Below, one piece after another: positions 21,401-64,000 of a stretch of 64,000 nt of DNA. The translations under genes were made by a program, and so were the position numbers. The notes under the pieces were generated by a model. The model worked only from the letters and a program-made list of their open reading frames with translations, was not told where the DNA came from and ran no database searches. The number at the start of each line of letters is the position of its first letter. The stretch's first letter is position 1. The stretch comes from Macrostomum lignano (Eukaryota), in the NCBI GenBank assembly GCA_002269645.1, contig NIVC01001996.1, positions 1-64,000 of the forward strand, read 5' to 3'.

Positions 21401-24400
21401 AGGCTACAACCCCAACACTAGGCTACAACCGCAACACTAGGCTACAACCCCAACACTAGGCTACAACCCCAACACTAGGCTACAACCCCAATACTAGGCT
21501 ACAACCCCAACACTAGGCTACAACCGCAACACTAGGCTACAACCCCAACACTAGGCTACAACCGCAACACTAGGCCACAGCCCAGAAAGGATCGAGAAAG
21601 GGCCAGTGACAGCAGAGGCAAAGAAACTCAGCGCCAAACATGTCCGACTCTCGCACCACACGATCCCCTTGGTTCGATTCGGTGTGCAGCCCCATTTATC
21701 GTAATTGTGAACAAAAATATTGGTCTGAACGTTGTCGCACGATTCACACAGAGTGTACATGCCCGATGATTAGAAAGTCATGGCTGCTGTACACCTTGTA
21801 TGAGCGTGTGGATGAGTGCGTGTCTGAGTACAATATCTGGAAGAATGCCCCCCTGTGCTGATTGTGGAACAATTTCGCCGATATTCAGAGCAAACTCTCC
21901 TGCAAATATCTATTAATAAGTGACAAAATTGATTCCCTAACATTCGATTATTTGTCTATTTCGTTTAAGACAAAACAAGAAATAATATTTTTGCAGAGGC
22001 AACCTATGAAAGCGTACTGAAGTTTGCCCAGGACAACTACGGTCCATTGTTCACTCGTTTACAAAAGCAGCAGCAGCAGCAAAAGTCACCGCAGCCACAG
22101 CAGTCTCCGCCCCGACAGCTGTTTATAGAGGTGCTTGTTTATGGCAATGCCAAAGCAAAAGAAGCAGTGGCCGCGGCAAAGAAAATCCTGGACAAAGTCT
22201 CTTCGCAACAGTCTCCAGCAGCAGCAGCAAAAGCTTTGTCACCTTCATCTTGGGAGTCGCTGAAGAGCCGAGGCGTCCTACTTCCACCGGGAAGTCACTA
22301 TCTGCTTAAATTGCCGAGTAGCACAAAATCAGGCATGGCGTCGAGTTGCGTGGTCGTCTTTCAGTTCGTTACGCCTCTTTCTCTTAAAACTGGTGAAAAA
22401 ATTGCCCAGGATTTTCTTTTTGATTTGCTTCTGCGGATTCTTCGTCTGAACATTGAACAGAGCGACGTACCCGGTTGTGCTCAGGTCCAACTGGAGCAGA
22501 TACCCGGCCATCACGGAAATATTCTTGTGATCGATGCCGCGTCTATCACTCAGCACCCAACTGTGGTACGTGCAGCGTTATGAAATGCTCATTTTATTAT
22601 TAGGATTTATTATATAAATAATCAGGGATGTCATGTATCAGAAATCAAGGATGCATCAGGGATTCCAGGATCAGGGATGCCAGCATCAAGGATGCCAGCA
22701 TCAAGGATGCCAGCATCAAGGATGCCAGCATCAAGGATGCCAGCATCAAGGATGCCAGCATCAAGGATGCCAGCATCAAGGATGCCAGCATCAAGGATGC
22801 CAGCATCAAGGATGCCAGCATCAAGGATGCCAGCATCAAGGATGCCAGCATCAAGGATGCCAGCATCAAGGATGCCAGCATCAAGGATGCCAGCATCAAG
22901 GATGCCAGCATCAAGGATGCCAGCATCAAGGATGCCAGCATCAAGGATGCCAGCATCAAGGATGCCAGCATCAAGGATGCCAGCATCAAGGATGCCAGCA
23001 TCAAGGATGCCAGCATCAAGGATGCCAGCATCAAGGATGCCAGCATCAAGGATGCCAGCATCAAGGATGCCAGCATCAAGGATGCCAGCATCAAGGATGC
23101 CAGCATCAAGGATGCCAGCATCAAGGATGCCAGCATCAAGGATGCCAGCATCAAGGATGCCAGCATCAAGGATGCCAGCATCAAGGATGCCAGCATCAAG
23201 GATGCCAGCATCAAGGATGCCAGCATCAAGGATGCCAGCATCAAGGATGCCAGCATCAAGGATGCCAGCATCAAGGATGCCAGCATCAAGGATGCCAGCA
23301 TCAAGGATGCCAGCATCAAGGATGCCAGCATCAAGGATGCCAGCATCAAGATCAGGGATGTCAGGGATCAGGGATCAGGGACGCCAAAGCTAACTCCAAT
23401 AGTGCTGCATACTTGTACATGTATACTTTTGATATTCATTTGTTAAAAGGGCTGCAACCACGTCTACACACGGGGTATTTATTCACAAGCTACTTCTTCG
23501 AAATGTTTTTTGTTATACTTGCAATTTTGATCCCAGATTGAAGATCAAATTGAATCTTTCATCGGACGTACTGAAGCAATGATCAATACAGCTCTGGCCA
23601 ACCCGGCATTCGATTGGAGACAGGGTTGTAAAGAAATGATTGAGACAAAGACTTGCCGGAACGTTACTCAGCAGGGCGGCTTCTATTGGAAAGCTATCAC
23701 TGGCTCGGCATACCGATTCGCCTGGGACACTAGCTCCGGAGCCTACCAGAACCTGCCGGAAAACTTTGACAAAACAGTCAACAAAGAGTTGATCGCTCTG
23801 TGTCAGGTACCGACTGTCGAGTATGGGTTGAGTTAAAGTGGGTGTTCCCAACCAGTTTTATTAACTCCTCTTCGACACCCTTACGTCCCGATCTCTAGGC
23901 TACGCTACATACCGACAGAAAACGTCATTGGAAATGGCTTCCGGCCATGAACAAAAATCTCAATAAGTATGGACGATAGATCTTTTATTCCCTAGATAGG
24001 CCACTTTGTATTGCGGCAATAGGGAAAGAGCGATCGTTGTTTATCGGTTGCTTAAATTTTGAGTTCAATAGCTTAGGGACATACATGTAGGCGCTATTTT
24101 TTTGAGAATTTGATAGAACTTGTGGAACGAACATTTCCACAAAGGAGGTAAATAAATTCTACTATTCAAACTAAGAATTATGCATGCAGAGACTACTGAC
24201 GAAATTGAGTTCAGTAGTTGATGGTAAAGTTTTAAAGTTGTTGAGTTGTAAAGTTTTCAAATTAGCTTATATGGTCACTATAGTGGTTGATGAGTGGCCC
24301 ATCTTGTGTATATATAATCTTTGGTGTGGACTTTTGAATAAGCTATCTTGATTATATATGGCCAGAAGCCATACTCCCGACCACAGATCCTAAAAACACT

Positions 24401-29878: not shown

Positions 29879-30251
29879 TCATTTACTTTTAGCCAAGTGA
29901 ACTGTCGGTAAAGCACTACAGGAAATAAACTGGGCATTGTTTTCTTCATATTATAGAAACTATTACTTTTTGACTAAAGCAGCGATTTTTTAACTCGCGA
30001 AGATGTTACATTTTTTATTTACAACTTTAGTATAGTTTATTTTTATAATTTTAAACTATCGTACAATAGATTTAGACAAGAAAACAAGAAAATCACTTAA
30101 CAACAAAATGAACCGTTAGGATTCGTTGATACTATTATAGTCAAGCATATTACCGAAATTTCAACGAGAAAATGATACTATAGTTTATCTGTGTTGAAAA
30201 TAGGTAAAACAAAACAGTTATTAATAGGTGAGTCTTATGTCTTATATAATT

Positions 30252-31012
30252 ACAAGCTGTTGAAACCCGCGGATTTTGAACCCGGGGAATTCCAATACCC
30301 GGAACTACTTTTACACGTATTCTGAAATCTAAGGCCATACACAAACAAAAACTTGTTAATAGTTAGTAGGATAGAGGTAGACATAAAATGGAGCACATTC
30401 GTGTAAAATTAGGGTTTGAGGCAAACGTTGATATTGTTGGCTGGGGTACTGCGCAGAATGTCAGGCAATGTCTGTCTGACTCTAAAACATGTATTGGCAA
30501 ACTCTGGCCAATATGTACTCTCCCTATGTCCCTTGGATCCTTTAAAATTTCTATCGTCTCTTCTGTTTCCTTTCTTCTCTCTTGTCCCTCGTCTCTCCTC
30601 TCTCTTCTCTCCTCTCTTCTCTCATATCTTCCCTCATCTCTTCCCTATTCTTTTCTCTCTCCTCTCCTCTCTCCTTTCTACTTTTTGTTTTCTCTCTGCT
30701 CTCCTCTCTCCTCTCTCCCATCTTCTTTCGTATCCTCCCTCATCTTTCTTCTCTTTCATATCTCTTATCTCATCTCAATTCCCTCTTCTTTTCTCTCTCC
30801 TCTCCTCCCTCCTCTCTACTTTTTCGTTTTCGTTTTCGTTTCTCGTTGACCCTCCTCTCCTCTCTCCTCTCTCCCCCTCTTCTCTCTCGTCTCTTCCTTC
30901 TCCTCTCTATTCTTTTCTCTCATCTCTTAACTCTCTCCTCTACTCTCTCATCTCTCCTTTCTATTCTTTTATCTTTTCTCTCTTATCTCTTCTCGTTTCT
31001 CTCTGCTCTGCG

Positions 31013-31043
<31 letters not shown>

Positions 31044-33106
31044 CCTCTCTCTCTCTCTTATCTCTCCTCTCCCATCTCTCTTCTCCTCTCTACTCTCTCC
31101 CCTCTTCATTCTCCTATTTCCTCTTCTCTCTCCCTGTCTCTCCTCTCTCCTCTAGTCTCTGTAATCTCTTCTCTCTTCTCTCTCCTCTGTTCTCTCTACT
31201 CTCCCATCTCTCGTCTGTTCACCCTCATCTCTGCTCTCTCATCTGTCATCTTTACTCTCTTATACGTTCTCTCACTTATCTCCTCTGTACTCTTCTCTTT
31301 CACCTCTTCTGACTCCTCTCTTTCCTTTCTCCTTTCTCCTCTCCTCTTCTCTTCTCTTCCCTCTTCTATACTGTCTCCCTCTCTTGTCTTCTCTCGTCTC
31401 TCTGCACTCTCCTCTCACCTTTTTCATCTCTCATCTTTACTCTCTCATCTCTCCTTTAATCTGTCTCATCTCTACAATCTCATCTCTCCTTTCTCCCCTC
31501 TTCTTACACCCCTCTCTTATCTCTATCTCTTCTCTTCTCACTCCTCTCTCCCCCTCTTATCTCCTCTCTTCTTTATCCTTTCTACTCTCTCCTCTCCTCT
31601 CCTCCTCTTGACCCTCTGTCATCTTCTTTCTGCTCTCTCATCTCTACTCTCTTCTCACTCTTCTCTACTTTCCTCTCATCGATCCTCTGTCTCATCTCTC
31701 CCCTCTTCTTACATTTACTCTTTCCTCTCCCTCCTTTCTCCCCTCCTCTCGCTTCTTCCTCCCTTCCCTCTGCTCTCTCCTCACCACTTGTCTCTCCTCT
31801 TATCTTCCATGTTTTCTCTTATCCCCCTCTCGCCTCTCCTCTCTTCTAATACTAATTAGTCTATTCCTTCTCCTTTCCACTCTCATCTGGCCCGCACATA
31901 AGCTGGATTCTTTATCTGGCTTTTGAAGTAAAAGTCTGCCGATCCCTGCTTCGAAAGCCAGTTTGTGGGACGTACTACTCTCATGGTTGTTCTCATGCTT
32001 TGTTCACGTCATCTTTCTTGCCAATTTGCAGCCCTGAAAGGAATTTGTGTATCTTCAGCTCCACTGCAGTCTGCATCAGTCTAACAACCAAGGAAATACG
32101 CATTTCTTAGGAGGCCATTTAAATTTTAGAGTACTTTTAAGAGAAACTTAAAATTTCCATGGTGTGCGGTGTGCCTAATTTAGTAGGGTTGTATTTCATT
32201 GCATCGCATCGCCTTTTCATAAATCTTTCGCTTTTACAAACCATGCTGGATTCCCTCGATTTGCCAATTGCCAATTGCCATCCACTGTTAAACTGCTGCA
32301 GAGTTTGCCAATACAGAGGGGAGGGCAGTGGTTAGAATTTCTCACTAAACTGTTATGGCTAAACGAAGCCTCTCCACTCTCGGGGTGCAGAGAAGGCTAT
32401 AAATAAAGTTATTCCAAAACACTGTACATTTGCTATGTACATTCAGTCCTATCGCCTGACCCTTCGTCTGGCTCTGGGGGAATGAGTGAGTGAGTGGCAC
32501 AAACAACAGAAAAAGCAGACAAACTTCACATGCTTACAGTTTCTTTTTCGGTTGAGTTACAGAGTTGAAACTTTACATTTAGACAGAGAATGGGTCAATG
32601 AAGAATTGTGTCAAGTTTGAAGTCAATCGCTTTACGTGAAGCAAACTTATGGCAGCTGAAAGTTAGTCAATTTTGAAACCCTTTTACACATCTGGGCCCA
32701 GATCGGGTAAGAGGCAGGCGGGCGGAGGTTGGGGTGGTTGCTACGCTGAAAAAAACAGCCTAACTTTAAAAGCGCACAGCACCGCTCAGGATTAACTTTG
32801 ATACTCGAAATTTTACACGATTGTGCCAAAATAGTTAAAGATTATCTGTGTCAAATTTGAAGAGAATCGGTAGAAGTGGAGCGGCGCTATGGAGGATTTA
32901 GTGAAAAAATCGCGCATTTTGAGCAGTTTTTTGTACTTTTAGGTAGGAAGACTTGAGTCTAGGAAATTAAAAGGTAGCCTAAGACATTCTCCGTAGTAAG
33001 TTTAGGGTGGGTGTAAAGTTTGGTGTAATTTGGTTGAGCGGTTTGGGAGTCCATAGCGAAGTAATTTGTCCACAGACAGACAGAGTTTTGATTTTTATAG
33101 GTAGAG
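30252..33106 (+). mobile_element. Putative non-autonomous rolling-circle (Helitron/Helentron-associated, HINE/DINE-like) element, copy 1, with a long CT-rich interior
   Basis: Starts ACAAGCTGTTGAAACCCGCGG and ends ...GAGCGGTTTGGGAGTCCATAGCG...CACAGACAGACAGAGTTTTGATTTTTATAGGTAGAG. Has internal TGTGTCAA.TTTGAAG..AATCG modules and is joined head-to-tail to copy 2. The family assignment is by resemblance only. Confidence 0.55.
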
Positions 33107-36231
<3,125 letters not shown>

Positions 36232-50100: not shown

Positions 50101-53100
50101 ATGAGTGATGCCGGAGTGACAATATGAGTGATGCCAGAGTGACAGGGTGAGTGATGCCGGAGTGACAGGATGAGTGATTCCAGAGTGACAGGGTGAGTGA
50201 TGCCGGAGTGACAAGATGAGTGATGCCAGAGTGACAAGATGAGTGATGCCGGAGTAACAGGGTGAGTGATGCCGGAGTGACAGGGTGAGTGATGCCGGAG
50301 TGACAGGATGAGTGATGCCAGAGTGATAGGATGAGTGATGCCGGAGTGACAGGATGAGTGATGCCGAAGTGACAGGATGAGTGATGCCAGAGTGATAGGA
50401 TGAGTGATGCCGGAGTGACAATATGAGTGATGCCGGAGTGACAGGATGAGTGATGCCGGAGTGACAAGATGAGTGATGCCGGAGTGACAAGATGAGTAAT
50501 AGAGTGACAAGATGAGGCAGTGAGTGAAAGGGAGACAGGATGAGTGACGAGAATGACCAGCCGAGTGACAATGTCAGAGTGACAAACAAACACCCCATCC
50601 CCGCAGAACGTCATCCCGCAAAGAGACTCCGTTGCATTTCGCTTTGCGCTTCAAAAAAGTAGCGGCCGCCGAGCGTCTGATCCGAGCAGGTGCCGATTTG
50701 GAGACCCGGGCCAGCATCGGCAACGGCGAGCACCAGCAGGGTGTACACGTGGCCGCGCAGCTGGGCTTGAACAGCTGTATCCGCCTGCTGGCAGAGTACG
50801 GCGCCAATGTCAATTCGACTATGACTTTGAAATGCGTCGAACGAGTGACCCCGTTACATCTGGCGGCTTTGAACGACCTGTCGGAGACTGTCAAGATTCT
50901 TGTCATGCTTGGTGCCGATGTTAATTGCCAGCGTAGCGACACCTTCACGCCTTTGTTAACTGCCGTGACCAAGTCTAACGTGTGCGCTGTCAAGTGTCTT
51001 GTTCGGGCTGGGGCCGATATTCACACTCGCTGCATTGTGTCCAGAAGCAAGGATGCCACCTGCCTGCACATCGCTGCCCAGGTAAGCTCACTGGCAGGTA
51101 GGGGGAGACAGATTGACAGGTGAGAGTAGATATCAAGTAGTTTGGCAGGTAAATATCAGGTAGTTTGGCAGGTAGACATCGGGTAGTATGGCAGGTAGAT
51201 ATCAGGTAGTTTGGCAGGTAGACATCGGGTAGTATGGTAGGTAGATATCGAGTAGTTTGGCAGGTAGATATCGAGTAGTTTGGCAGGTAGATATCGAGTA
51301 GTTTGGCAGGTAGATATCGGGTAGTATGGCAGGTAGATGTCAGGTAGTTTTGCAGGTAGATATCAGGTAGTTTGGCAGGTATACACCGGGTAGTATGGCA
51401 GGTAGATATCAGGTAGTTAGGCAGGTATACACCGGGTAGTATGGCAGGTAGATATCAGGTAGTATGTCAGGTAGATATCGGGTAGTATGGCAGGTAGATA
51501 TCGAGTAGTTTGGCATTTAGATATCAGATAGATATCAAGTAGTTTAGCAGGTAGATATCGGGTAGTTTAGCAGGTAGATATCGGGTAGTATGGCAGGTAG
51601 ATATCGGGTAGTTTTGCAGGTAGATATCGGGTAGTTTTGCAGGTAGATATCAAGTAGTTTAGCAGGTAGATATCGGGTAGTTTTGCAGGTAGATATCGGG
51701 TAGTTTCGTTTGCGTGCCTAAATATTGGCACAAAACAATCGGCTTTCATTGCAGGTCGGGAGCCTGGAAATCGTTGACCTGCTGCTAGAGCGGGGCGCCA
51801 ACCCACTGGCCCGGATGGTCACCGGGGATCGAGCCGGCATCCTTCCAGTCCACCTGGCCTCGGAGACCGGCCATCTGGACGTTATTAAGCGCTTCCTCGA
51901 CATCGGCGTAGACGTGAACGCGCAGGAAGACTGCGGCCTGACCTGCCTGCACTACGCGGCCAACGGTGGCAAGGCGGACATCATTAAACTGCTGCTTGAG
52001 AGGGGCGCCAGGGTGGATCTGAAGGCCGCCTATGATGACGGTGAGGCTTTTATTGTTTGGTTTTGGTAAAACTGGTTTGTAGTATAATTATTACGGTATA
52101 GAGAGGATTAGGGTATGGAAGGAACTGAAGAGAGCGGTAGTATGATGGGGGAGAGCGGAAGTGTGATGGGGGAGAGCGGAAGTATTATGGGGGAGGGCGG
52201 AAGCATGATGGGGGAGAGCGGAAGCATGAATGGGAGAGCGGAAGCGTGATGGGGAGAGCGGAATCATGATGGTGGAGAGCGGAATCATGATGGGGGAGAG
52301 CGGAATCATGATGGGGGAGAGCGGAAGCATAGTAATCTGAATCTGATATGGAACAGAGAATGGCAGAGAGAAACAAAGACCTGCAACAAAGACACAAGGA
52401 GTGAATTGTCTCACTCGCTGTCTCACTCGCAGGCAATCGAGTGGACGTTCTGCCGCTGCACATGGCCTGCGAGAAGGGCAACGCCGAGTGCGCCCGGCTG
52501 CTGGTGGAGGCCGGCAGCCCTCTGGATGCCACCCTGTTCCGCAACAGACGCGGTAACATCACCCCACTGTACCTGGCCGTTGCGGAGAACAATCCCGAAG
52601 TTGTATCTGTTTTGCTAGCTGCCGGCTCCGATGTCAACATTCAAGACGGCATCGGCGCCGCGCCGCTGCACATCTCCTGCCAGCGCGGCTATCACGACAT
52701 CTTCTGCCAGCTGTTGTGCCATCCTAGCGTCAACGTGAACATCGCCACATTCAACGGCGTCACCCCTATCCATATCGTGTCGGAGAAGGGCCACTTCGAC
52801 ATGGCCATGTGGTTGATCGCTCGCGGAGTGAATGTTAATCCGTTGTGCCGGATTAAGGACGTGCACTCGGGCCAGATGTCTGAGGACATCATACCGTTGA
52901 ATCAGGCGTGCGGCTTCGGCCATCTGCAGATTGTAAAACTGCTGTTGCAGGTTTGTGTTCAAGTCTTTGTTCTTTGTTGTTGACCCTTATCATTAGTCTC
53001 TGTATTGTTTTGTTAGTTTAGTCTCTGTCAGTCTTTGTTCTTCAAGATGAGTCTCTGTTAGTCTTCGTTCTGCAAGATTATTCTTTGTTAGACTCTTTTC

Positions 53101-54675
53101 TAAAAGATTAGTCTCTATCAGTCTTTGTTCTGTAAGATTGGTCTTTGCCAGTCTTTGTTCTGTAGTATTAGTCTCTATTTGTCTTTGTTCTGCGATATTA
53201 GTCCCTGTTAGTCTTTGTTCCGTAGTATTAGTCTCTAGTAGTCTTTGTTCTGCAATATTAGTCTATATTTGTCTTTGTTCTGCGATATTAGTCCCTGCAA
53301 GTCCTTTTCTGTAATATTAGTCTTTGTCCCGAATCACCATCACCACCCCTCCCCAAACTCGAACGCGCAGAACGGCGCCGATGTGCACCACGGTGAGAAT
53401 TTCGAAGGCCGCCGTGGCATCGCCAGCATTCATTGCGCCGCAATTCGCGGCCGGCATCACGTTATACCATTGCTGCGCAAGTTTGGCGCCAATTTGAATG
53501 CCACAGACGAGCAGGGCTGGAGCCCGCTGCACTGGGCTGTTCACGAGCGATTTTACGATACTGTGCTGCTGCTGCTGCAGAATGGCGCCGACCCCAGGCT
53601 GCTCAACCAGGTGAGTCTCAAGCCACACGACCGCCTTGGTTCGATTCCCACATGTGTGAGCCGCTGTACACCCTGTCTGAGCCGCTGTGCACCCTGTGTG
53701 AGCCGCTGTACACCCTTGTCAGCCGCTGTACACCCTGTGTGAGCCGCTGTACACCCTGTGTGAGTCGCTGTACACCCTGTGTGAGCCGCTGTACACCCTG
53801 TGTGAGCCGCTGTGGACCCTGTGTGAGCCGCTGTACACCCTGTGTGAGTCGCTGTACACCCTGTGTGAGCCGCTGTACACCCTGTGTGAGCCGCTGTACA
53901 CCCTGTGTGAGTCGCTGTACACCCTGTGTGAGTCGCTGTACACGCTGTGTGAGCCGCTGTACACCGTGTGTGAGCCGGTGTACACCATGTGTGAGCCGCT
54001 GTGCACCCTTGTCAGCCGCTGTACACCCTGTGTGAGCCGGTGTACACCATGTGTGAGCCGGTGTACACCCTGTGTGAGCCACTGTGCACCCTGTGTGAGC
54101 CACTGTGCACCCTGTGTGAGCCGCTGTGCACCCTGTGTGAGCCACTGTGCACCCTGTGTGAGCCGCTGTACACCCTGTGTGAGCCGCTGTACACCCTGTG
54201 TGAGTCGCTGTACACGCTGTGTGAGCCGCTGTACACCCTGTGTGAGCCGGTGTACACCCTGTGTGAGCCGCTGTACACCCTGTGTGAGTCGCTGTACACG
54301 CTGTGTGAGCCGCTGTACACCCTGTGTGAGCCGGTGTACACCATGTGTGAGCCGCTGTGCACCCTTGTCAGCCGCTGTACACCCTGTGTGAGCCGGTGTA
54401 CACCATGTGTGAGCCGGTGTACACCCTGTGTGAGCCGCTGTGCACCCTGTGTGAGCCACTGTGCACCCTGTGTGAGCCGCTGTCGAAATTTCGAGTCCTG
54501 TCATCCTGGTTTCTATAGACGTTGAAAAGTACTTGCCTCTAACAATGATTTCTGTGTCATCACACAGGATGGCCAGCGGCCCATCCAGATGGCCACAACC
54601 AACGACATCACCTCCGTTCTGGAGCGGTTCGAAGCGCAACTGCGGAACGATGGTGAACCAATGTCAACAGAATGA
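44167..54675 (+). CDS. Ankyrin-repeat-only protein, 10 exons, ~1255 aa, about 30 repeats
   Basis: Exons 44167-44889, 45893-46559, 48078-48194, 48625-48944, 49309-49622, 50607-51081, 51755-52040, 52433-52950, 53371-53610, 54568-54675. All GT-AG and in phase, 3768 nt. Repeated G.TPLH.AA..G...V..LL..GADVN motifs. The start codon is uncertain (44167 or 44206). Confidence 0.88.
44912..45000 (-). mobile_element. SINE family 1 3' tail fragment
   Basis: GTGCAACCGACAGCTCAGCCGCAGCTATTGCGCGGCGCATCTGAAGGCTGCGTAA matches 10285-10345. Confidence 0.7.
45066..45830. repeat. Ankyrin intron 1 minisatellite, 21-bp GATTGGAATCTATAGACTTCT
   Basis: Direct tandem array with degenerate copies. Confidence 0.95.
46640..48010. 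repeat. Ankyrin intron 2 minisatellite, 21-bp GATAAGAATCCATAGAATACT
   Basis: Direct tandem array (MDSYQYS ORF artefacts). Confidence 0.95.
48285..48620. repeat. Ankyrin intron 3 minisatellite, 23-bp CTGACTGTCTTGTCACTCTTTAT
   Basis: Period 23 (e.g. 48303, 48326). Confidence 0.95.
49010..49255. repeat. Ankyrin intron 4 minisatellite, 23-bp GGTAGATATCAGGTAGTTTCAC(A/G)
   Basis: Period 23 (49022, 49045). Confidence 0.95.
49700..50560. repeat. Ankyrin intron 5 minisatellite, 23-bp GAGTGACAGGATGAGTGATGCCG
   Basis: Direct tandem array. Confidence 0.95.
51125..51705. repeat. Ankyrin intron 6 minisatellite, 23-bp CAGGTAGATATCGGGTAGTTTGG
   Basis: Period 23 (51241, 51264, 51287); same family as intron 4. 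Confidence 0.95.
52135..52330. repeat. Ankyrin intron 7 minisatellite, 21-bp GATGGGGGAGAGCGGAAGCAT
   Basis: Period 21 (52144, 52165). Confidence 0.9.
52990..53310. repeat. Ankyrin intron 8 minisatellite, 30-bp ATTAGTCTCTATCAGTCTTTGTTCTGTAAG (degenerate)
   Basis: Period 30 (53107, 53137). Confidence 0.85.
53650..54480. repeat. Ankyrin intron 9 minisatellite, 21-bp GTGTGAGCCGCTGTACACCCT
   Basis: Direct tandem array (VSRCTPC ORF artefact), preceded by a SINE2-like B-box at 53623-53649. Confidence 0.95.
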
Positions 54676-55109
54676 GCCTTTCTGTTATTTGTTTTTAACT
54701 AACCAACTTACTACTGAATCTAACTGAAATCAGTAGTATGCATATATATTTATCATCATTTTAAAGCACTACCTATTAGTGATTAAAATAACCGTGATAA
54801 TCAGACTGGCTAATTAAATATGCATTCAGTAATTGCACTAACGGCTTATTAATATTGTTATCTTTATTTAATACCGTACTAATAATGTCTGTGTACAATT
54901 ATCATATCATGCAAATTTATTTACCTGTGTTATCTAACTGACTTTTTACTTCTTGATGCGTACTTTTTCAGAAGAAATAATGGATTCTTAAGCTTATTGA
55001 GCTTTGATTTATAGTTTGATTAATTATTAATTGTTGTGCCATTGTGTTTCAATTTTAATGCCTGCTTATCTGCTTTGGTAAAAACCTCACCTCGATTTAA
55101 GTCAACATC

Positions 55110-55700
55110 AGATGATAATGATGGTGAGAGTCATAGGTGGGATTAGATGATAATTAGCGTGAGAGTCAAATGTGAGATTAGATGATAATTGGGGTGAGAG
55201 TCAAATGTGAGATTAGATGATAATTGGGGTGAGAGTCAAATGTGAGATTAGATGATAATTGGAGTGAGATTAGAAGATAATTAGCGTGAGAGTCAAATGT
55301 GAGATTAGATAATAATTGGGGTGAGATTAGATGATAATTAGCGTGAGAGTCAAATGTGAGATTAGATGATAATTGGGGTGAGAGTCAAATGTGAGATTAG
55401 ATGATAATTGGGGTGAGAGTCATAGGTGAGATTAGATGATAATGTAGGTGAGGGTCATATGGGAGATTAGATGATAATTGGGGTGAGAGTCAAATGTGAG
55501 ATTAGATGATAATTGGGGTGAGATTAGATGATAATTAGCGTGAGGGTCAAATGTGAGATTAGATGATAATTGGGGTGAGGGTCAAATGTGAGATTAGATG
55601 ATAATTAGGGTGAGAGTCATATGTGAGATTAGATGACAATGAAGGTGAGGGTCATAGGGGAGATTAGATTATAAGGGTGAGAGTCAGATGGAATTATGAC
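55110..55700. repeat. Intergenic minisatellite, ~35-bp GTGAGAGTCAAATGTGAGATTAGATGATAATTGGG
   Basis: Period 35 with internally deleted variants. Confidence 0.9.
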
Positions 55701-57419
55701 AAATGGGGTGAGTCATAGTTAAGATTATGTCAGTGGGGTGAGAGTCATAGATTATGCTAATGAGGTGCGGTTCCGATGCCGATGAGTTCAATGTTCTCGC
55801 AGGCAAATAAGTTAGTGTTAATTGTTTGGAAAATTTGCAACTCAGTGCCTTCCTTAAACCCAACCTGATGGACCGTTTAATCTCTGCTTCAACGGTGATG
55901 GATTAATTGATTGATTGATTTGATTTTGCGATGATCTCAGCTAGTACTGGAAAGTAAGTAGTTATATGTTCAGCTCACAAATTTATTGTGTCTGTTTTGA
56001 GTTCATTTTAATTAGTTTCGCCTTTCAAAAACTTTAACTGATTTGTCCTTGTTGTGTCCCGACTTTTTACTCTTGGCTTTTTCCTCCGTTTTTCTCCTCG
56101 ATTACGCTCGTGTATTGTACTGTACTACTCATCTGTGATAGCTTAGCAGTAGTATGCTTAGCACATAATGCGATTTTAATCGCCCTGTCAGGGTTTTATT
56201 ATATTATTAATCCGCTCTCATCTATTTGTGGCTTCTGTGTCTCCATTTTTTCTTAGAATAGATTTTCTTACGTGTACACGCAGGCTACTAAGATTGTGTT
56301 AATATATGCTATAATTTCATGTACATGCAGCTCCCGCTCATTTTCCTGCTCTAGACCACACATACTAAAATAACTAACTAGATGGGCCACTCAGTATAAG
56401 ACAAGGCAGCTGAAATCACTTTGATAAGTTCAGAAACCCAAGCTTGCAGGCGTAAACAGCTTGCTAATTGGTTCAGCAATAATGTACATTGGCCAGTCCA
56501 CTGAAATGTACATGGCAGCTTTAGGCTGGAATTCCGAAAAAGGCAATAAAAATTGGGGCGGGGCGGGGGGTAGAGAAAGGCGCGGTTAGAGGGTTTAAGT
56601 GGGGTAAGAGCCAATAAATGAGCCTTGGCTTTAAAAATACAATAAAATGCTTCCGTTTAACTTGCTACTGAAAGTAGCTTACACACAAATGTGCTGAGTG
56701 GCCCATCTAGTTATTATAGTATCTGTGCTCTTACAAATTTACTCGTAAATGAAAAAATTCGACCTCAGACTTTGCATCGCCGCCCTTTTTTCAAAACCTT
56801 GAAAAATTCTGTGATTCGAAAATTTTGCAGGCTTACACACACACACGCTCTGATACACACTTGCATTAATTTTCTCTTTGCTTCGTTCTTGTTTGATTGC
56901 TTTTTTCAGGCCATTCAAATAGTAACTACTACTCGCTGTCTGAGGTTATTAGTAGTGTGCTAAGATTTATTGCCGGACACCGCGTGTTTTGGCAAAGCTT
57001 TGAACAAATTTACTCACTCTCTACTAGTAATTGAGTAGTATCATTTGCGCATAGGATTTGGCCAGTTTTACTTCTGTGTGGGTTTTATTGCTGGGTTAAA
57101 ATTTGTCTCATATATCTTCCTCTGTGTGCGATTAAATCAAACTGCTTATTATTATTATTATTTGCTAATATTAACTACAGTGGCATGTCTGTAAGTGGTA
57201 AATTATACCATATATTTATATATAAATATACTATACATACGCGAAACTTAACCGCACAACACGTTGTGCTATAGCAGCCTTTCAAGTAGATAGCTAACAG
57301 GAGGGCTCAATGTGGTAACTGCAATCGGCTTTGTATTTTGACACTGCGTGTTTTTCATCATATTTGCATGACGTCAGGCTCAATCAGAGAGCAGGCAAGC
57401 AGGTTCATCTCAATCATGT

Positions 57420-60190
57420 GAATGGCTTCTGAATCACACTTGGGAATCATTTCTGAATCACACTTGATAATCGTTTCTGAATCACACTTGGGAATCATTT
57501 CTGTATCACACTTGGGAATCATTTCTGTATCACACTTGGGAATCATTTCTGAATCACACCTGAGAATCATTTCTAAATCACACTTGAGAATCATTTCTGA
57601 ATCACACTTGAGAATCGTTTCTGAATCACACCTGAGAATCGTTTCTAAATCACACTTGAGAATCATTTCTAAATCACACTTGAGAATCATTTCTGAATCA
57701 CACTTGAGAATCATTTCTGAATCACACTTGAGAATCATTTCTGAATCACACTTGAGAATCATTTCTGAATCACACTTGAGAATCGTTTCTGAATCACACT
57801 TGAGAATCGTTTCTGAATCACACTTGAGAATCATTTCTAAATCACACTTGGGAATCATTTCTGAATCACACTTGAGAATCATTTATGTATCACACTTGAG
57901 AATCATTTATGTATCACACCTCAGAATCATTTCTGAATCACACCTGGGAATCATTTCTAAATCACACTTGAGAATCATTTCTAAATCACACCTGAGAATC
58001 ATTTCTAAATCACACTTGAGAATCATTTCTGAATCACACTTGGGAATCATTTCTGAATCACACCTGAGAATCATTTCTGAATCACACTTGAGAATCATTT
58101 CTAAATCACACTTGAGAATCATTTCTAAATCACACTTGGGAATCATTTCTGAATCACACTTGAGAATCATTTCTGTATCACACTTGAGAATCATTTCTGT
58201 ATCACACTTGAGAATCATTTCTGTATCACACTTGAGAATCATTTATGTATCACACCTGAGAATCATTTCTGAATCACACTTGGGAATCATTTCTGAATCA
58301 CACTTAAGAATCATTTATGTATCACACTTGAGAATCATTTATGTATCACACCTGACAATCATTTCTGAATCACACTTGAGAATCATTTCTAAATCACACT
58401 TGAGAATCATTTCTAAATCACACTTGGGAATCATTTCTGAATCACACTTAAGAATCATTTCTGAATCACACTTAAGAATCATTTCTGAATTACACTTGAG
58501 AATCATTTATGTATCACACTTGAGAATCATTTATGTATCACACCTGAGAATCATTTCTGAATCACACTTGGGAATCATTTCTGAATCACACTTAAGAATC
58601 ATTTCTGAATCACACTTAAGAATCATTTCTGTATCACACTTGAGAATCATTTCTAAATCACACTTGAGAATCATTTCTGTATCACGCTTGAGAATCATTT
58701 CTGTATCACACTTGAGAATCATTTCTGTATCACACTTGAGAATCATTTATGTATCACACCTGAGAATCATTTCTGAATCACACTTGGGAATCATTTCTGT
58801 ATCGCACTTAAGAATCATTTCTGTATCACACTTGAGAATCATTTCTGTATCACACTTGAGAATCATTTCTGTATCACACTTGGGAATCATTTCTGAATCA
58901 CACCTGAGAATCATTTCTGAATCACACTTGAGAATCATTTCTAAATCACACTTGAGAATCATTTCTGTATCACGCTTGAGAATCATTTCTGAATCACACT
59001 TGATAATCGTTTCTGAATCACACCTGAGAATCATTTCTAAATCACACTTGAGAATCATTTCTGAATCACACTTGATAATCGTTTCTGAATCACACTTGAG
59101 AATCATTCCTGTATCACACCTGAGAATCATTTCTGAATCACACTTGGGAATCATTTCTGAATCACACCTGAGAATCATTTCTGTATCACACCTGAGAATC
59201 ATTTCTGAATCACACTTGGAAATCATTTCTGAATCACACTTGAGAATCGTTTCTGAATCACACTTGAGTTCTGAATCACACGTTTCTAAATCACACTTGA
59301 GAATCATTTCTAAATCACACTTGAGAATCATTTCTGTATCACACTTGAGAATCATTTCTGAATGACACTTGAGAATCATTTCTAAATCACACTTGAGAAT
59401 CATTTCTGTATCACGCTTGAGAATCATTTCTGAATCACACTTGATAATCGTTTCTGAATCACACCTGAGAATCATTTCTGTATCACACTTGAGAATCATT
59501 TCTGAATGACACTTGAGAATCATTTCTAAATCACACTTGAGAATCATTTCTGTATCACGCTTGAGAATCATTTCTGAATCACACTTGATAATCGTTTCTG
59601 AATCACACCTGAGAATCATTTCTAAATCACACTTGAGAATCATTTCTGAATCACACTTGATAATCGTTTCTGAATCACACTTGATAATCGTTTCTGAATC
59701 ACACTTGAGAATCATTTCTGAATCACACTTGATAATCGTTTCTGAATCACACTTGAGAATCATTTCTGAATCACACTTGATAATCGTTTCTGAATCACAC
59801 TTGAGAATCATTTCTGAATCACACTTGATAATCGTTTCTGAATCACACTTGAGAATCATTCCTGTATCACACCTGAGAATCATTTCTGAATCACACTTGG
59901 GAATCATTTCTGAATCACACCTGAGAATCATTTCTGTATCACACCTGAGAATCATTTCTGAATGACACTTGGGAATCATTTCTGAATCACACTTGAGAAT
60001 CATTTCTGAATGACACTTGAGAATCATTTCTGAATGACACTTGGGAATCATTTCTGTATCACACTTGAGAATCATTTCTGAATGACACTTAGGAATCATT
60101 TCTGAATCACACTTGAGAATCATTTCTGTATCACACTTGAGAATCATTTCTGAATGACACTTGGGAATCATTTCTGAATCACACTTGATA
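57420..60190. repeat. Large satellite, 24-bp GAGAATCATTTCTGAATCACACTT, ~115 copies
   Basis: 2.8-kb direct array; source of the SHLRIISE/MILKCDSE ORFs. Confidence 0.98.
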
Positions 60191-60789
60191 ATCGGTTGTA
60201 AACTGACAATAGGCTAAATTTGTATCCGTGAAGGCACAGTTGAGTTAAGAATCTGCTGACGCCAAAAATATTGATCCGCAGGTGTTTCCGCGTTACTAAA
60301 ATTAGATGCCAAGCAGCAGAGGCCCCTACAACGCAGGGCTTATGGGTCCTGCAACTGACTTCTGACGCTTTTAGACCGTCGAGCGCTTGCTAGCTGACTG
60401 CATCCCATCCCGCTGAAACACACCCCCCCCCCATTCCAGCCTTGTTGGCTATTGAATATAATGTGAAACCCTCATCATTCCGGGGAGCTGCAGATGACAG
60501 ATAAAGGAGGCTTCAATTAATCAGCCGCTATAGTATAGATTTGGAGCAAGAGTTATTTTATATATACGTATATTTGTCAGCGCTTAGTTAGATGACAAAC
60601 AGCCAGCAAGCTACGGTAGACCAGAGTTAAATGGCAGTTTTTTCTACAGTCGCAGCCTAGCGCAGGTAGCAATGCTGCTGCTATGCAGGCATTGCTAGAT
60701 GAGTTTTGTTCCTCTTTTAACTTCTGCGTGGCTCAGGCCGTAGGGCAGGGCTACGGGCCATTGTTTCAACCGCTGACGTGAGCTGCATG

Positions 60790-61054: not shown

Positions 61055-61548
61055 TAGACTTGGTTGCTTTCCAATCCAGATTAGACAATTATTAGAAGTC
61101 CATGACTCCACAGTGACTGATGACGTCTGCTAATAGTCTTAATAAAGCATAGGGCCTGTCGGGAGCGCCAGCATTAACCCGCTGCCAACCCCAACCCCGC
61201 ACCCTCGCCGTTGCCAGGCGGTAGCGAAGTCAACAAGCCCGCAGGGTAGTGGACTCCCTCCTCTCATCCTCCACCTTCCCTTCTCTCATCCCTGTCCCTG
61301 CTGCCTGGTTGGCTACCAAAAAATTGGAGAAAGAAAAATCCTTAGTCGCAAGAGCAGCGCTTTCGCACTAGACTAAAAACGGGCATTGTCCGGGACGCAA
61401 AGCAGAAATCCTCAAAAATAATCGGGATCCCAAAGAGTCCTTCGATTTTGAGACATCATCAATCTCAACTTGATTAAGGTTCAGAGTGAACGTCAGGGGT
61501 AAGTACGGCTAGGATTTCTCTGATTGATGACTTAGACCTGCCTATCAG

Positions 61549-61555
61549 TATAAAA
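61549..61555 (+). promoter_or_regulatory. Candidate TATA box of the prohormone gene
   Basis: TATAAAA 60 nt upstream of the ATG at 61615 (context AACAATGG). Confidence 0.45.
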
Positions 61556-61614
61556 CTATTTAGTTCGGAATTGTCTTCGTTGAAATTCCACAGACAAGCA
61601 TTCGAATTGCAACA

Positions 61615-62710
61615 ATGGTGGCTACTGAGAAGCTCATCTTCGTCTGCCTTCTGGTCATGGCGTCTCTCGCTGCTGCTGAGGTGAGCTGACACTTGGCAAG
61701 CGTTTGGGGGGGGGGCGGTTCGACTTTGACGGTGGTGTAGTGTCTTGAGCCCTGACATTGGCCACTGAACCAGCCCTGACAATGGCCACTGAACCAGCCC
61801 TGACAATGGCCACTGAACCAGCCCTGACAATGGCCACTGAACCAGCCCTGACATTGGCCACTGAACCAGCCCTGACATTGGCCACTGAACCAGCCCTGAC
61901 AATGGCCACTGAACCAGCCCTGACAATGGCCACTGAACCAGCCCTGACAATGGCCACTGAACCAGCCATTACAATGGCCATAAAATTGCTGTCGCTTTTC
62001 CAGAAACTGGAATCGCCCGAGATAGAAGAGGAGGTTAAGGCTGTAGACAGGCAGCGTCACAGGCACCATGGTCACCACCGCGAAGGCGCTCTGCCATCGA
62101 GCCGCCACCGCAGCCCCCACGGGCGTCATGCTAAGCACGGACGGCACCACCACGCCAAGCACGGGTCCAACGTTGACAGACGAGCCGCCCTAGCCGACTT
62201 CAAACGCGCCGCCCTTTCGGACTTCAAACGTGCCGCCTTAGCCGATTTCAAACGTGCCGCCCTCTCGGACTTCAAACGCGCCGCCCTAGCCGACTTCAAA
62301 CGTGCCGCCCTTTCGGACTTCAAACGCGCCTCCCTCTCGGACTTCAAACGCGCCGCCCTAGCCGACTTCAAACGTGCCGCCCTTTCGGACTTCAAACGCG
62401 CCGCCCTAGCCGACTTCAAGCGCACGCCCGGGCACGGCAAGCAGCACCACCGTCAGGCCAGCGAGAGCAGGATGTCGCACCACAAAACCAAGTCCCAGGT
62501 AAGTAGCACCAAAAAAGGTTGAAAAAATCAATTTTACGCATATAACTGTCTGTGTATAGAACGGTCCTCTATTTAATTCAATTGATCATCATCCTGCAGT
62601 CTCACCACCCGAGAGACAGCAGCGGCAAGCGGTCCTACTACTGGGACGTCTGCAGCCACTGGATCAACGGTCAGGAGCGCCTCTACGTGTGCAAAAAGCA
62701 GATCCGTTAA
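61615..62710 (+). CDS. Secreted neuropeptide/prohormone-like precursor, 3 exons, 223 aa, with ten KR-flanked AAL(A/S)DF-type peptides and a C-terminal two-Cys peptide
   Basis: Exons 61615-61680 (signal peptide MVATEKLIFVCLLVMASLAAA/E), 62004-62498 and 62600-62710; all phase 0, GT-AG, ending in TAA. RR then (AALADF x5, AALSDF x4, ASLSDF x1), each followed by KR; then GKR-SYYWDVCSHWINGQERLYVC-KK-QIR*. Confidence 0.88.
61750..61980. repeat. Prohormone intron 1 minisatellite, 24-bp CACTGAACCAGCCCTGACAATGGC, ~9 copies
   Basis: Direct array inside intron 61681-62003 (MATEPALT artefact). Confidence 0.95.
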
Positions 62711-63811
62711 AGTTTGAAGACTGACTGACTCAAGCGACTGTTTAGAGATAGATTACTGTGAGAGTTGACGGAGACAGGTGAGAGTTAATTGAGAAGGCTA
62801 AATATAGTGTAAAAACAAGTTTATTATCGAAATTATAATTCCCGTCATGTGCTTAAACTATAATCTTCAAAATCATAGAGCCGGTTTGGCAACTAAAAAA
62901 ATTTTTTTATTATTATCTTCTCACATAATATTGTGATTCAGTTTTGTTTTAATTGTGACTTTCTGTTGTTTTATTTTAATCGGAATCATCGCTTGGCGAG
63001 CGTCACTTGTTCACTTGTGTCCAATATTAACCTCGAAAAATGTTTTGTCTTGTTTGAATTTTTAAGGAATATTAATCTGCTTTTTATAAGCACAAAGAAT
63101 GTTTGTTAATTATTAATTTTTTCTGCAAATATGCCGGTTGAAGGTAATAATATTATTTATTCAAACACCTTTTTTCGCCATCAATATAATCAAATCCGAA
63201 AGTTTGCTTTTGGTAAATCTTTTCTGTTTAACTAACTCGTCACTAAAACTTCTCTTCTTAATACACTTAATAAAAACGACCGACATGAGTCTGCAGCCGG
63301 ACTCAATTAACCGAATCGCATTGGTCCCAAAAATGCAAAGTTTTATCAAGGTGTTGCTTTTATTGATTATTGATCGGATGGTGATGTCTTCAATTAATCT
63401 CAATTCAAATCTCCAATTCCGATTTTAGATATCTTTAAAACAGATTTCCAAGAGATCATCTTCAGCAGTTTAATTTAACCAATTCATTTAATTTAATCTT
63501 TAATTAATTGTAAGTTTGCTTTAACAAAGTCGATTTGCATTGTCTTTCTACTTTGCCAATTGTTGCTAGCGCACTAGAATTGGGATTATTAAAAAAACAA
63601 AAATGTCTCACAGACGTCTGTCTTTACTTTCTATATTCATCCACTCTGTCTCGCTGCTTTTTGGCTTCTAAAACAAAATAGAAGGTGAGGACCGCATGAC
63701 TGACTACTTGGGGATAAGGGGATTCGATCCGCATCAATGATGTAGATTGTTCCAGCGTATACCACCAGTTCTGATGACTGCAGCAGTCTCGGGTTTTTCA
63801 ACCCCCACGGC

Positions 63812-64000
63812 ATCAATCGATTTGATCAATCAATAATCGCATCAATCGATTTGATCAATCAATAATCGCATTAATCGATCTGATCAATCAATAATCGCAT
63901 CAATCGATCTGATCAATCAATAATCGCATCAATCGATTTGATCAATCAATAATCGCATCAATCGATTTGATCAATCAATAATCGCATCAATCGATTTGAT
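63812..64000. repeat. 29-bp tandem repeat ATCAATCGATTTGATCAATCAATAATCGC running off the window end
   Basis: Period 29 (63812, 63841). Confidence 0.95.

Follow-up and report, generated by a model that had tools for sequence, protein, structure and literature searches.

Does a short three-exon gene close to the end of a 64,000-nucleotide stretch of the Macrostomum lignano genome (assembly GCA_002269645.1, contig NIVC01001996.1, positions 1 to 64,000; hereafter the window) encode a precursor of signalling peptides, as its tandem hexapeptides AAL[A/S]DF flanked by Lys-Arg suggest, or should this array be explained in another way? The gene is real and transcribed, and it encodes a secreted protein of multi-copy precursor architecture. 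On balance we favour the view that this protein is a precursor of the neuropeptide or peptide-hormone type, from which a set of small signalling peptides would be released. That the precursor is processed appears well supported by the anatomy of the protein and by its pattern of conservation; it is plausible but biochemically unproven. The protein is already deposited in public databases as a hypothetical or secreted protein; as a precursor it is unnamed and restricted to its lineage, and its architecture is a very common one.

The spliced coding sequence (CDS) comprises 672 nt, which encode 223 amino acids and a stop codon, in exons at 61615-61680, 62004-62498 and 62600-62710 of the forward strand. 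Both introns have GT..AG borders and are of phase 0 (reading of 61300-63100). The initial annotation had proposed this three-exon gene together with a candidate TATA box, and its coordinates, its splice borders and the TATAAA motif at 61549 were all verified. The layout of the product is MVATEKLIFVCLLVMASLAAA|EKLESPEIEEEVKAVD RQRHRHHGHH...HAKHGSNVD RR (AAL[A/S]DF KR)x10 TPGHGKQHH...SHHPRDSS GKR SYYWDVCSHWINGQERLYVC KK QIR. The proposed signal peptide, encoded by an exon of its own, is likewise borne out by the sequence: its Kyte-Doolittle 11-residue means reach 2.95 (residues 4-20), its hydrophobic core occupies residues 7-18, A-x-A stands directly before E22 with predicted cleavage at AAA|E, and members of the family carry the automatic UniProt names “Conserved secreted protein” and “Secreted protein”. 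The open reading frame (ORF) track supplied with the sequence does mask the gene, as had been remarked, because the minisatellite of intron 1 is open in the frame of exon 2 and reads into it, giving the misleading ORF 61758-62522 (+).

The transcription of the gene can be judged from two further GenBank loci of the same assembly (L001 and L002), which represent either homeologs or duplications of the window locus. Both are collinear with the window, with flanks 97-99% identical, and the 600 nt upstream of the window gene match those of L001 at 593 of 599 positions. In both loci the precursor sits between an ankyrin-repeat gene and an alpha/beta-hydrolase gene, repeats the three-exon layout of the window gene with identical junction sequences, and carries 11 units in the DNA. 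A homolog search of 5.8 billion proteins with the window protein returned matches from M. lignano only, namely GenBank BOX15_Mlig019341g1 (231 aa) and BOX15_Mlig008925g1 (207 aa), both named “hypothetical protein”, the UniProt entry A0A1I8G648 (“Conserved secreted protein”) and two frameshifted UniProt models. The precursor, described at first as unrecognised, was thus already present in GenBank and UniProt under the first three of these accessions, although not under the name of a prohormone. The spliced translation of L001 equals BOX15_Mlig019341g1 exactly, and the GenBank annotation of M. lignano was built from nothing but transcript assemblies, both RNA-seq-guided and de novo, in which ORFs were called by TransDecoder (PMC5730564). 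Because this annotation is transcript-derived and the CDS of L001 equals the GenBank protein, a spliced transcript with the proposed junctions exists, at least for the homeologs; this support comes from them and not from the window copy itself.

The central part of the protein is the hexapeptide array. Tandem Repeats Finder (TRF) places it at 62180-62423 with a period of 24, 10.2 copies, 82% matches and a score of 320, and reading in frame gives ten units at 62184-62423, with RR before the first and KR after each, in the order A,S,A,S,A,S,s,A,S,A (A = AALADF, S = AALSDF, s = ASLSDF). Both results agree with the array of ten 24-nt units as it was first described, and every one of the codon variants then listed (Leu CTA/CTT/TTA/CTC, Arg CGC/CGT, Asp GAC/GAT, Lys AAA/AAG) was found. 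Dibasic sites bound all ten hexapeptides, and GKR and KK bracket a peptide at the C-terminus. The statement that no Gly precedes KR holds for all ten repeat sites but not for the whole protein, since GKR occurs at residues 196-198.

The synonymous variation among the units had been taken to point to selection on the peptide, and three lines of evidence bear this out to different degrees. Among the 24-mer units 8 of 24 columns are variable, five of them purely synonymous and three with conservative replacements (K>R in the first flank and A>S twice), and the within-array pairwise ratio of non-synonymous to synonymous differences per site (pN/pS) is 0.17. When sites are counted by the Nei-Gojobori method and rounded, variation affects 5 of ~6 synonymous and 3 of ~18 non-synonymous sites (Fisher p=0.007). 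A cruder test of third against first and second codon positions is not significant (p=0.36), and the units are non-independent through unit-to-unit exchange; the within-array evidence is therefore modest and this line suggestive only.

The second line is the comparison of the window with L001, in which array units 1-6 differ by three synonymous and no replacement changes, while the other 438 nt of the CDS differ by no synonymous and five replacement changes (Fisher p=0.018 for the array against the rest of the CDS). Four of the replacements relative to L001/L002 (R63H, G169R, R174S and H184N) fall in His-rich spacers and the fifth (Q212R) in the C-terminal peptide, within its loop. The spacers may be under relaxed or positive selection, but the sites are too few for a test.

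The strongest of the three lines is a diverged paralog, revealed inside a messy 900-aa UniProt model of M. lignano (A0A1I8IA06) by an exhaustive phmmer search of 1.84 billion representatives. Its comparison with the window protein is at the protein level only; a second search with the paralog as query retrieved no GenBank copy. In the paralog the signal peptide is a different one (MNCALQVCLLLGLLVSVTSA|E) and the His-rich spacers are only ~30% identical to those of the window protein, while the array, composed of ten copies from {AALADF, AALSDF, ASLADF}, is 92% identical. One extra isolated copy, KR-AALADF-RKR, lies upstream and is separated from the array by 29 divergent residues. At the C-terminus (KRQLYWDICTRMENGEEK in the paralog and KRSYYWDVCSHWINGQER in the window protein) Y201, W202, D203, C205, N210, G211 and E213 are invariant, and the motif common to both paralogs is KRxxYWD[VI]C...NGxE. 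Since homogenisation of the array cannot explain the isolated copy, we conclude that two units are conserved: the hexapeptide, including the dibasic sites on either side, and the motif at the C-terminus. Conservation is centred on the peptides and the cleavage sites, and the spacers are free to diverge.

Three features were overlooked in the first reading of the gene: the GKR site, the conserved C-terminal two-cysteine peptide and the His-rich basic pro-region. The diverged paralog, too, had gone unnoticed. The pro-region had been called acidic, which is correct for residues 22-37 (~16 residues) but not for residues 38-80, which are basic and 22% His. His accounts for 21% of the segment that follows the array and for 20-40% in the spacers of the paralog, which retains this composition. 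Together the two His-rich segments make up ~40% of the mature protein; as spacers they evolve fast, and only their composition is kept. The GKR at residues 196-198 represents a classical amidation-type site and terminates a spacer peptide of 33 residues. Two cysteines with 12 residues between them (C205...C218, ring SHWINGQERLYV) lie in the last 25 residues, where GKR and KK bracket them; SYYWDVCSHWINGQERLYVC has a net charge of ~ -1, rising to as much as +2 if KKQIR is retained.

AlphaFold2, run on a shallow three-sequence alignment, gave no globular fold (mean predicted local distance difference test score, pLDDT, 58; predicted template modelling score, pTM, 0.22). The spacers are modelled as disordered (pLDDT <50 at residues 39-76 and 165-193), array residues 78-162 as one long helix (pLDDT 63-79) and residues 200-221 as a beta-hairpin (strands 200-209 and 212-221, pLDDT 70-81), the predicted turn of which is located at the conserved Asn210-Gly211. 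The hairpin is modelled with moderate confidence and is probably closed by a Cys205-Cys218 disulfide.

How would such a precursor work? As the sequence shows, exon 1 supplies a cleavable signal peptide, by which the protein would enter the regulated secretory pathway. A PC2-type convertase would then cut after RR82, after the ten KR pairs and GKR198, and at KK219-220; the exposed basic residues would be trimmed off by an enzyme of the carboxypeptidase E (CPE) type. The expected products are five AALADF, four AALSDF and one ASLSDF, all with free C-termini, two His-rich spacer peptides of 59 and 33 residues, and the 20-residue SYYWDVCSHWINGQERLYVC, probably a disulfide-closed (Cys205-Cys218) beta-hairpin. 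By the established PAM/CPE pathway, a GKR site would lead to amidation, and the 33-mer would end in Ser-amide. The released peptides may act as intercellular signals, and the hexapeptide and the C-terminal loop, being conserved, are presumably the active ones. Speculatively, the His-rich segments might serve for charge balance or for metal- and pH-dependent packing. In M. lignano a homologue of pc2 is expressed in the nervous system, and the animals cannot do without it, its silencing by RNA interference (RNAi) being lethal (PMC4490696).

Several points weigh against a neuropeptide or peptide-hormone precursor. Small, weakly acidic peptides without amidation, such as these hexapeptides, are less typical among neuropeptides than amidated ones. 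The modelling of the array as one long helix also fits an uncleaved helical repeat, and within-array conservation overstates selection because unequal exchange partly homogenises tandem arrays. The sequence searches revealed no homolog outside M. lignano, and the searched supplements of M. lignano papers contain no expression entries for Mlig019341 and Mlig008925. Cleavage and the mature peptides are predicted, and a neuronal or endocrine cell type and a receptor are putative.

The same architecture and dibasic processing could also yield exocrine or effector peptides, cut by a furin- or Kex2-like enzyme in gland cells: a pheromone, a seminal-fluid or mucus component, or host-defence peptides, of which the His-rich segments or the C-terminal hairpin would be the active parts. 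We consider this possible, if rather improbable. In its favour, the His-rich segments form a large part of the mature protein, with their composition retained in the paralog, and single-disulfide beta-hairpins are known among secreted defence peptides. The family is confined to its lineage, and the excess of replacement changes outside the array (five against no synonymous ones) is often seen in fast-evolving reproductive or defence genes; moreover, Kex2-processed repeat precursors outside nervous systems are well known, for example yeast alpha-factor and the fungal Kex2-processed repeat proteins (KEPs). However, the strongest conservation is in the hexapeptide and not in the His-rich segments, and the charge of the C-terminal peptide, even with KKQIR retained, is unlike that of cationic hairpin antimicrobials.

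A secreted repeat protein that is never cleaved, in which an amphipathic (AALADFKR)n helix and metal-binding His-rich parts would have a structural, adhesive or matrix role, seems to us distinctly unlikely. Ala, Leu, Lys, Arg and Asp favour helix, array homogenisation would conserve KR in any case, and residues 78-162 are indeed modelled as a single helix (pLDDT 63-79); but a single long helix is the usual AlphaFold output for Ala-rich repeats, and the model as a whole has no fold (pTM 0.22). The isolated AALADF of the paralog, bounded by KR and RKR and set apart by its 29-residue spacer, is hard to fit to a continuous helix. All six positions of the peptide are conserved, which goes beyond a hydrophobic stripe, and dibasic sites (GKR and KK) bracket the C-terminal loop as well. 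That there is no functional gene at all, only a minisatellite in a chance open frame or an annotation artefact, is extremely improbable and already largely refuted: the region is full of 24-nt minisatellites and several database models of the locus are frameshifted or collapsed (P0002-P0005, P0008), but the transcript-derived annotation has an identical spliced CDS structure at two homeologs, the array is synonymous-biased, the same peptide occurs in the diverged paralog, and the minisatellite units nearby have no relation to the coding unit.

Table 1. Features of the window gene and of the look-alike genes discussed below (positions are those of the window or of the locus named)
Feature	Position	Strand	Remarks
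Candidate TATA box, TATAAA	61549..61554	+	66 nt 5' of ATG; pattern position, putative function
Exon 1, M1-E22, signal peptide MVATEK / LIFVCLLVMASL / AAA|E	61615..61680	+	translation, hydropathy
Intron 1, GT..AG, phase 0	61681..62003	+	contains 24-nt minisatellite 61748-61980
Exon 2 start, residues 23-80: short acidic stretch, then His/Arg-rich spacer	62004..62177	+	22% His
RR, then ten hexapeptide+KR units	62178..62423	+	AALADF x5, AALSDF x4, ASLSDF x1
Exon 2 end, residues 163-187 of the His-rich C-spacer, TPGHGKQHHRQASESRMSHHKTKSQ	62424..62498	+	translation
Intron 2, GT..AG, phase 0, 101 nt	62499..62599	+	101/101 identical to L001
Exon 3 start: SHHPRDSS, then G-K-R	62600..62632	+	amidation-type site closing the 33-residue spacer peptide
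20-residue peptide SYYWDVCSHWINGQERLYVC, Cys205 and Cys218	62633..62692	+	translation; beta-hairpin predicted
KK, QIR, stop	62693..62710	+	translation
Look-alike gene, [AS]x[LI]NDF	L003 4470-5021		
Look-alike gene, [AS]x[LI]NDF	L003 9682-10113		
Look-alike gene, [AS]x[LI]NDF or ASW[AS]DM	L004 985-1479		
Look-alike gene, [AS]x[LI]NDF or ASW[AS]DM	L005 153-518		

The public gene models are unreliable for this precursor family. BOX15_Mlig008925g1 omits three units that are present in its own locus (L002 10001-11075, 11 units), A0A1I8G648 has a broken unit AALADFKPDFKR, and A0A1I8IZF9 and A0A1I8FHE4 are frameshifted through the array (P0002-P0005). The model A0A1I8FKU2 (P0008) fuses the ankyrin gene to a frameshifted copy of the precursor, which points to an artefact of gene prediction or else to read-through transcription of the two as one unit. 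In the window itself, ~50232-55750 (+) is collinear, at ~90-92%, with the 3' part of the 1241-aa ankyrin-repeat gene of L001, and has internal tandem repeats, for example ~21-nt steps around 53650-54480. A bacterial promoter and terminator scan, not relevant to a eukaryote, gave no result.

The repeats surrounding the gene differ from the coding array. The intron-1 minisatellite (61748-61980) consists of 9.7 copies of the 24-nt unit AGCCCTGACAATGGCCACTGAACC, which are 97% identical with one variable column; intron 1 measures 323 nt in the window and 279/278 nt in L001/L002, and the minisatellite copy number therefore differs between the homeologs. A very large 24-nt minisatellite (CATTTCTGAATCACACTTGAGAAT, at least ~90 copies, ~90% identical) occupies ~57470-60193 of the window, between the ankyrin gene and the precursor gene, and is also present in L001 (6727-8584). 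The upstream and intron-1 units agree at 14 of 24 positions, above the shuffle 95th percentile of 12, and on this evidence they may be distantly related. A shared origin of the coding array with the intronic or the upstream minisatellite was considered and rejected, the matches (11/24 and 10/24, respectively) being at the shuffle mean. The intronic repeat is also far more homogeneous (97%) than the coding array (82% matches). Elsewhere in the window, a 29-nt tandem repeat (GCATCAATCGATTTGATCAATCAATAATC, 6.6 copies, 97%) lies at 63810-64000 and reaches the window end. At 30001-36000, two of the three 2-kb windows have a GC skew of -0.42 to -0.61 and an AT skew of -0.36 to -0.46, with weaker skews (-0.21/-0.24) at 32-34 kb, and at 20001-22000 the GC skew is -0.32 and the AT skew +0.33; this strand-asymmetric composition probably reflects further long simple or tandem repeats.

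Is the hexapeptide confined to Macrostomum? The exhaustive phmmer search gave 175 matches, nearly all of them translated 8-residue minisatellites (e.g. MVRAMLHD, E=3e-37), and because many spurious repeats score better than the look-alikes described here, we rejected repeat-driven E-values as evidence of homology. The look-alikes, a few matches that resemble genuine secreted precursors, belong to eukaryotic contigs from metagenomes and SRA assemblies. They are P0067/P0153/P0154 with ALINDF, SLLNDF, ARLNDF, ATLNDF and STLYNF, P0155/P0156 with AMMNDF, SLLNDF, SSLGDF and AMLNDF, and P0045/P0081 with ASWADM and ASWSDM; P0045 alternates A and S at position 4 as the M. lignano array does. On contig L003 a second look-alike gene, with SILNDF and a terminal KR-ALLNDF-stop, stands 4.6 kb downstream of the first. 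The look-alikes resemble the M. lignano precursor in having a signal peptide, hexapeptides of the form [AS]-x-[LIMW]-x-D-[FM] and dibasic flanks without Gly, and their units vary mostly at synonymous sites, but they have neither His-rich spacers nor the C-terminal Cys loop. The hhalign alignment of the M. lignano family with them is limited to the 8-residue repeat. No mention of the look-alike peptides was found in the literature, and a scan of Joint Genome Institute (JGI) metagenomes with the family alignment gave 405 pattern matches, none of them confirmed.

One can suggest that AAL(A/S)DF is the Macrostomum member of a wider unnamed family of non-amidated signalling hexapeptides, [AS]-x-[LIMW]-x-D-[FM], co-released here with a conserved disulfide-closed beta-hairpin, but we think this unlikely to hold. 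Its other members would be the ALLNDF/SLLNDF/ATLNDF/AMLNDF and ASWADM precursors, whose homology is putative and a lead rather than a finding. If it were true, one precursor would deliver two unrelated ligands, and if the look-alikes were homologous, the peptide type would be spread beyond one genus.

The peptide-signalling repertoire of M. lignano is poorly catalogued, and would gain a lineage-specific system from this precursor and its two conserved candidate ligands. M. lignano is, to our knowledge, the only flatworm with routine stable transgenesis, and a highly repetitive, well-defined precursor should be easy to test in it experimentally. The locus also demonstrates that in a minisatellite-rich genome bacterial-style ORF tracks conceal secreted peptide genes with short exons. 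Existing ideas are not overturned, because lineage-restricted multi-copy precursors are common in invertebrates.

The comparison with known peptide systems agrees with the initial annotation in that no named family, including the described flatworm FLP, NPF, NPP and SPP precursors, was matched by Pfam, the Protein Data Bank (PDB), the searches of 5.8 billion and 1.84 billion proteins or the literature. Pfam gave noise only with the window protein, the paralog and the metagenomic look-alikes, and when the product of exon 3 was searched against PDB sequences, the matches were chance ones to influenza haemagglutinin (E ~1). No Ml-npp-type names were found in the literature. AALADF was absent from the full-text literature searched, although an earlier description in flatworm neuropeptide catalogues (McVeigh 2009; Koziol 2016) is possible.

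The two-cysteine C-terminus and the hairpin each recall a known class of peptides. The C-terminal rings of allatostatin C (AstC) and somatostatin enclose 6 and 10 residues, respectively, and bear the family aromatic motif; the M. lignano ring of 12 residues (C205...C218) does not match either spacing and has no database similarity, and membership in this type was rejected. Hairpin antimicrobials of the arenicin/tachyplesin type have a strong net positive charge and an amphipathic hairpin, and membership in this class was likewise rejected: a hairpin is predicted, but the charge of the M. lignano peptide is ~ -1 (+2 with KKQIR).

Precursors processed by Kex2 (yeast alpha-factor, fungal KEPs and the ribosomally synthesised and post-translationally modified peptides, RiPPs, of the ustiloxin/phomopsin/victorin type) share with the M. 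lignano protein a signal peptide and tandem KR-ended cores, which are often hexapeptides. Fungal RiPP precursors of this kind adjoin DUF3328-type oxidases. Membership of the M. lignano gene in this group was rejected, as it is an intron-containing flatworm gene with ankyrin-repeat and alpha/beta-hydrolase neighbours.

Among spiralians, the molluscan achatin-like precursor (Aplysia apALNP, GFFD/GYFD, PMC11277431) also carries short, acidic, non-amidated copies with dibasic flanks. Achatin-type peptides, however, are tetrapeptides G-[FY]-x-D that end in Asp, whereas those of M. lignano are hexapeptides A-[AS]-L-[AS]-D-F that end in Phe, and achatin-like membership was rejected since the 223-aa product has no GFxD motif. 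The D-amino-acid-containing peptide SYADSKDEESNAALSDFA derived from Aplysia apALNP includes the string AALSDF (PMC11277431); as a sign of kinship this single 6-mer match was dismissed, being at chance level and accompanied by no other similarity.

Within flatworms, the npp/spp prohormones of Schmidtea mediterranea (PMC2953531) invite comparison with the M. lignano precursor, which in its layout resembles the multi-copy neuropeptide precursors of invertebrates in general. The strings LADF, LSDF and DFKR are absent from the planarian prohormone paper (Collins 2010, PMC2953531), and no sequence similarity to these or other named multi-copy precursors was detected. Most flatworm neuropeptides have a C-terminal Gly for amidation, which the M. 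lignano hexapeptides lack, and the M. lignano precursor adds long His-rich spacers and the C-terminal two-cysteine peptide. Common to the two are the signal peptide, the short copies flanked by KR or RR, the divergent spacers between them and a dependence on PC2, which for M. lignano is a predicted one.

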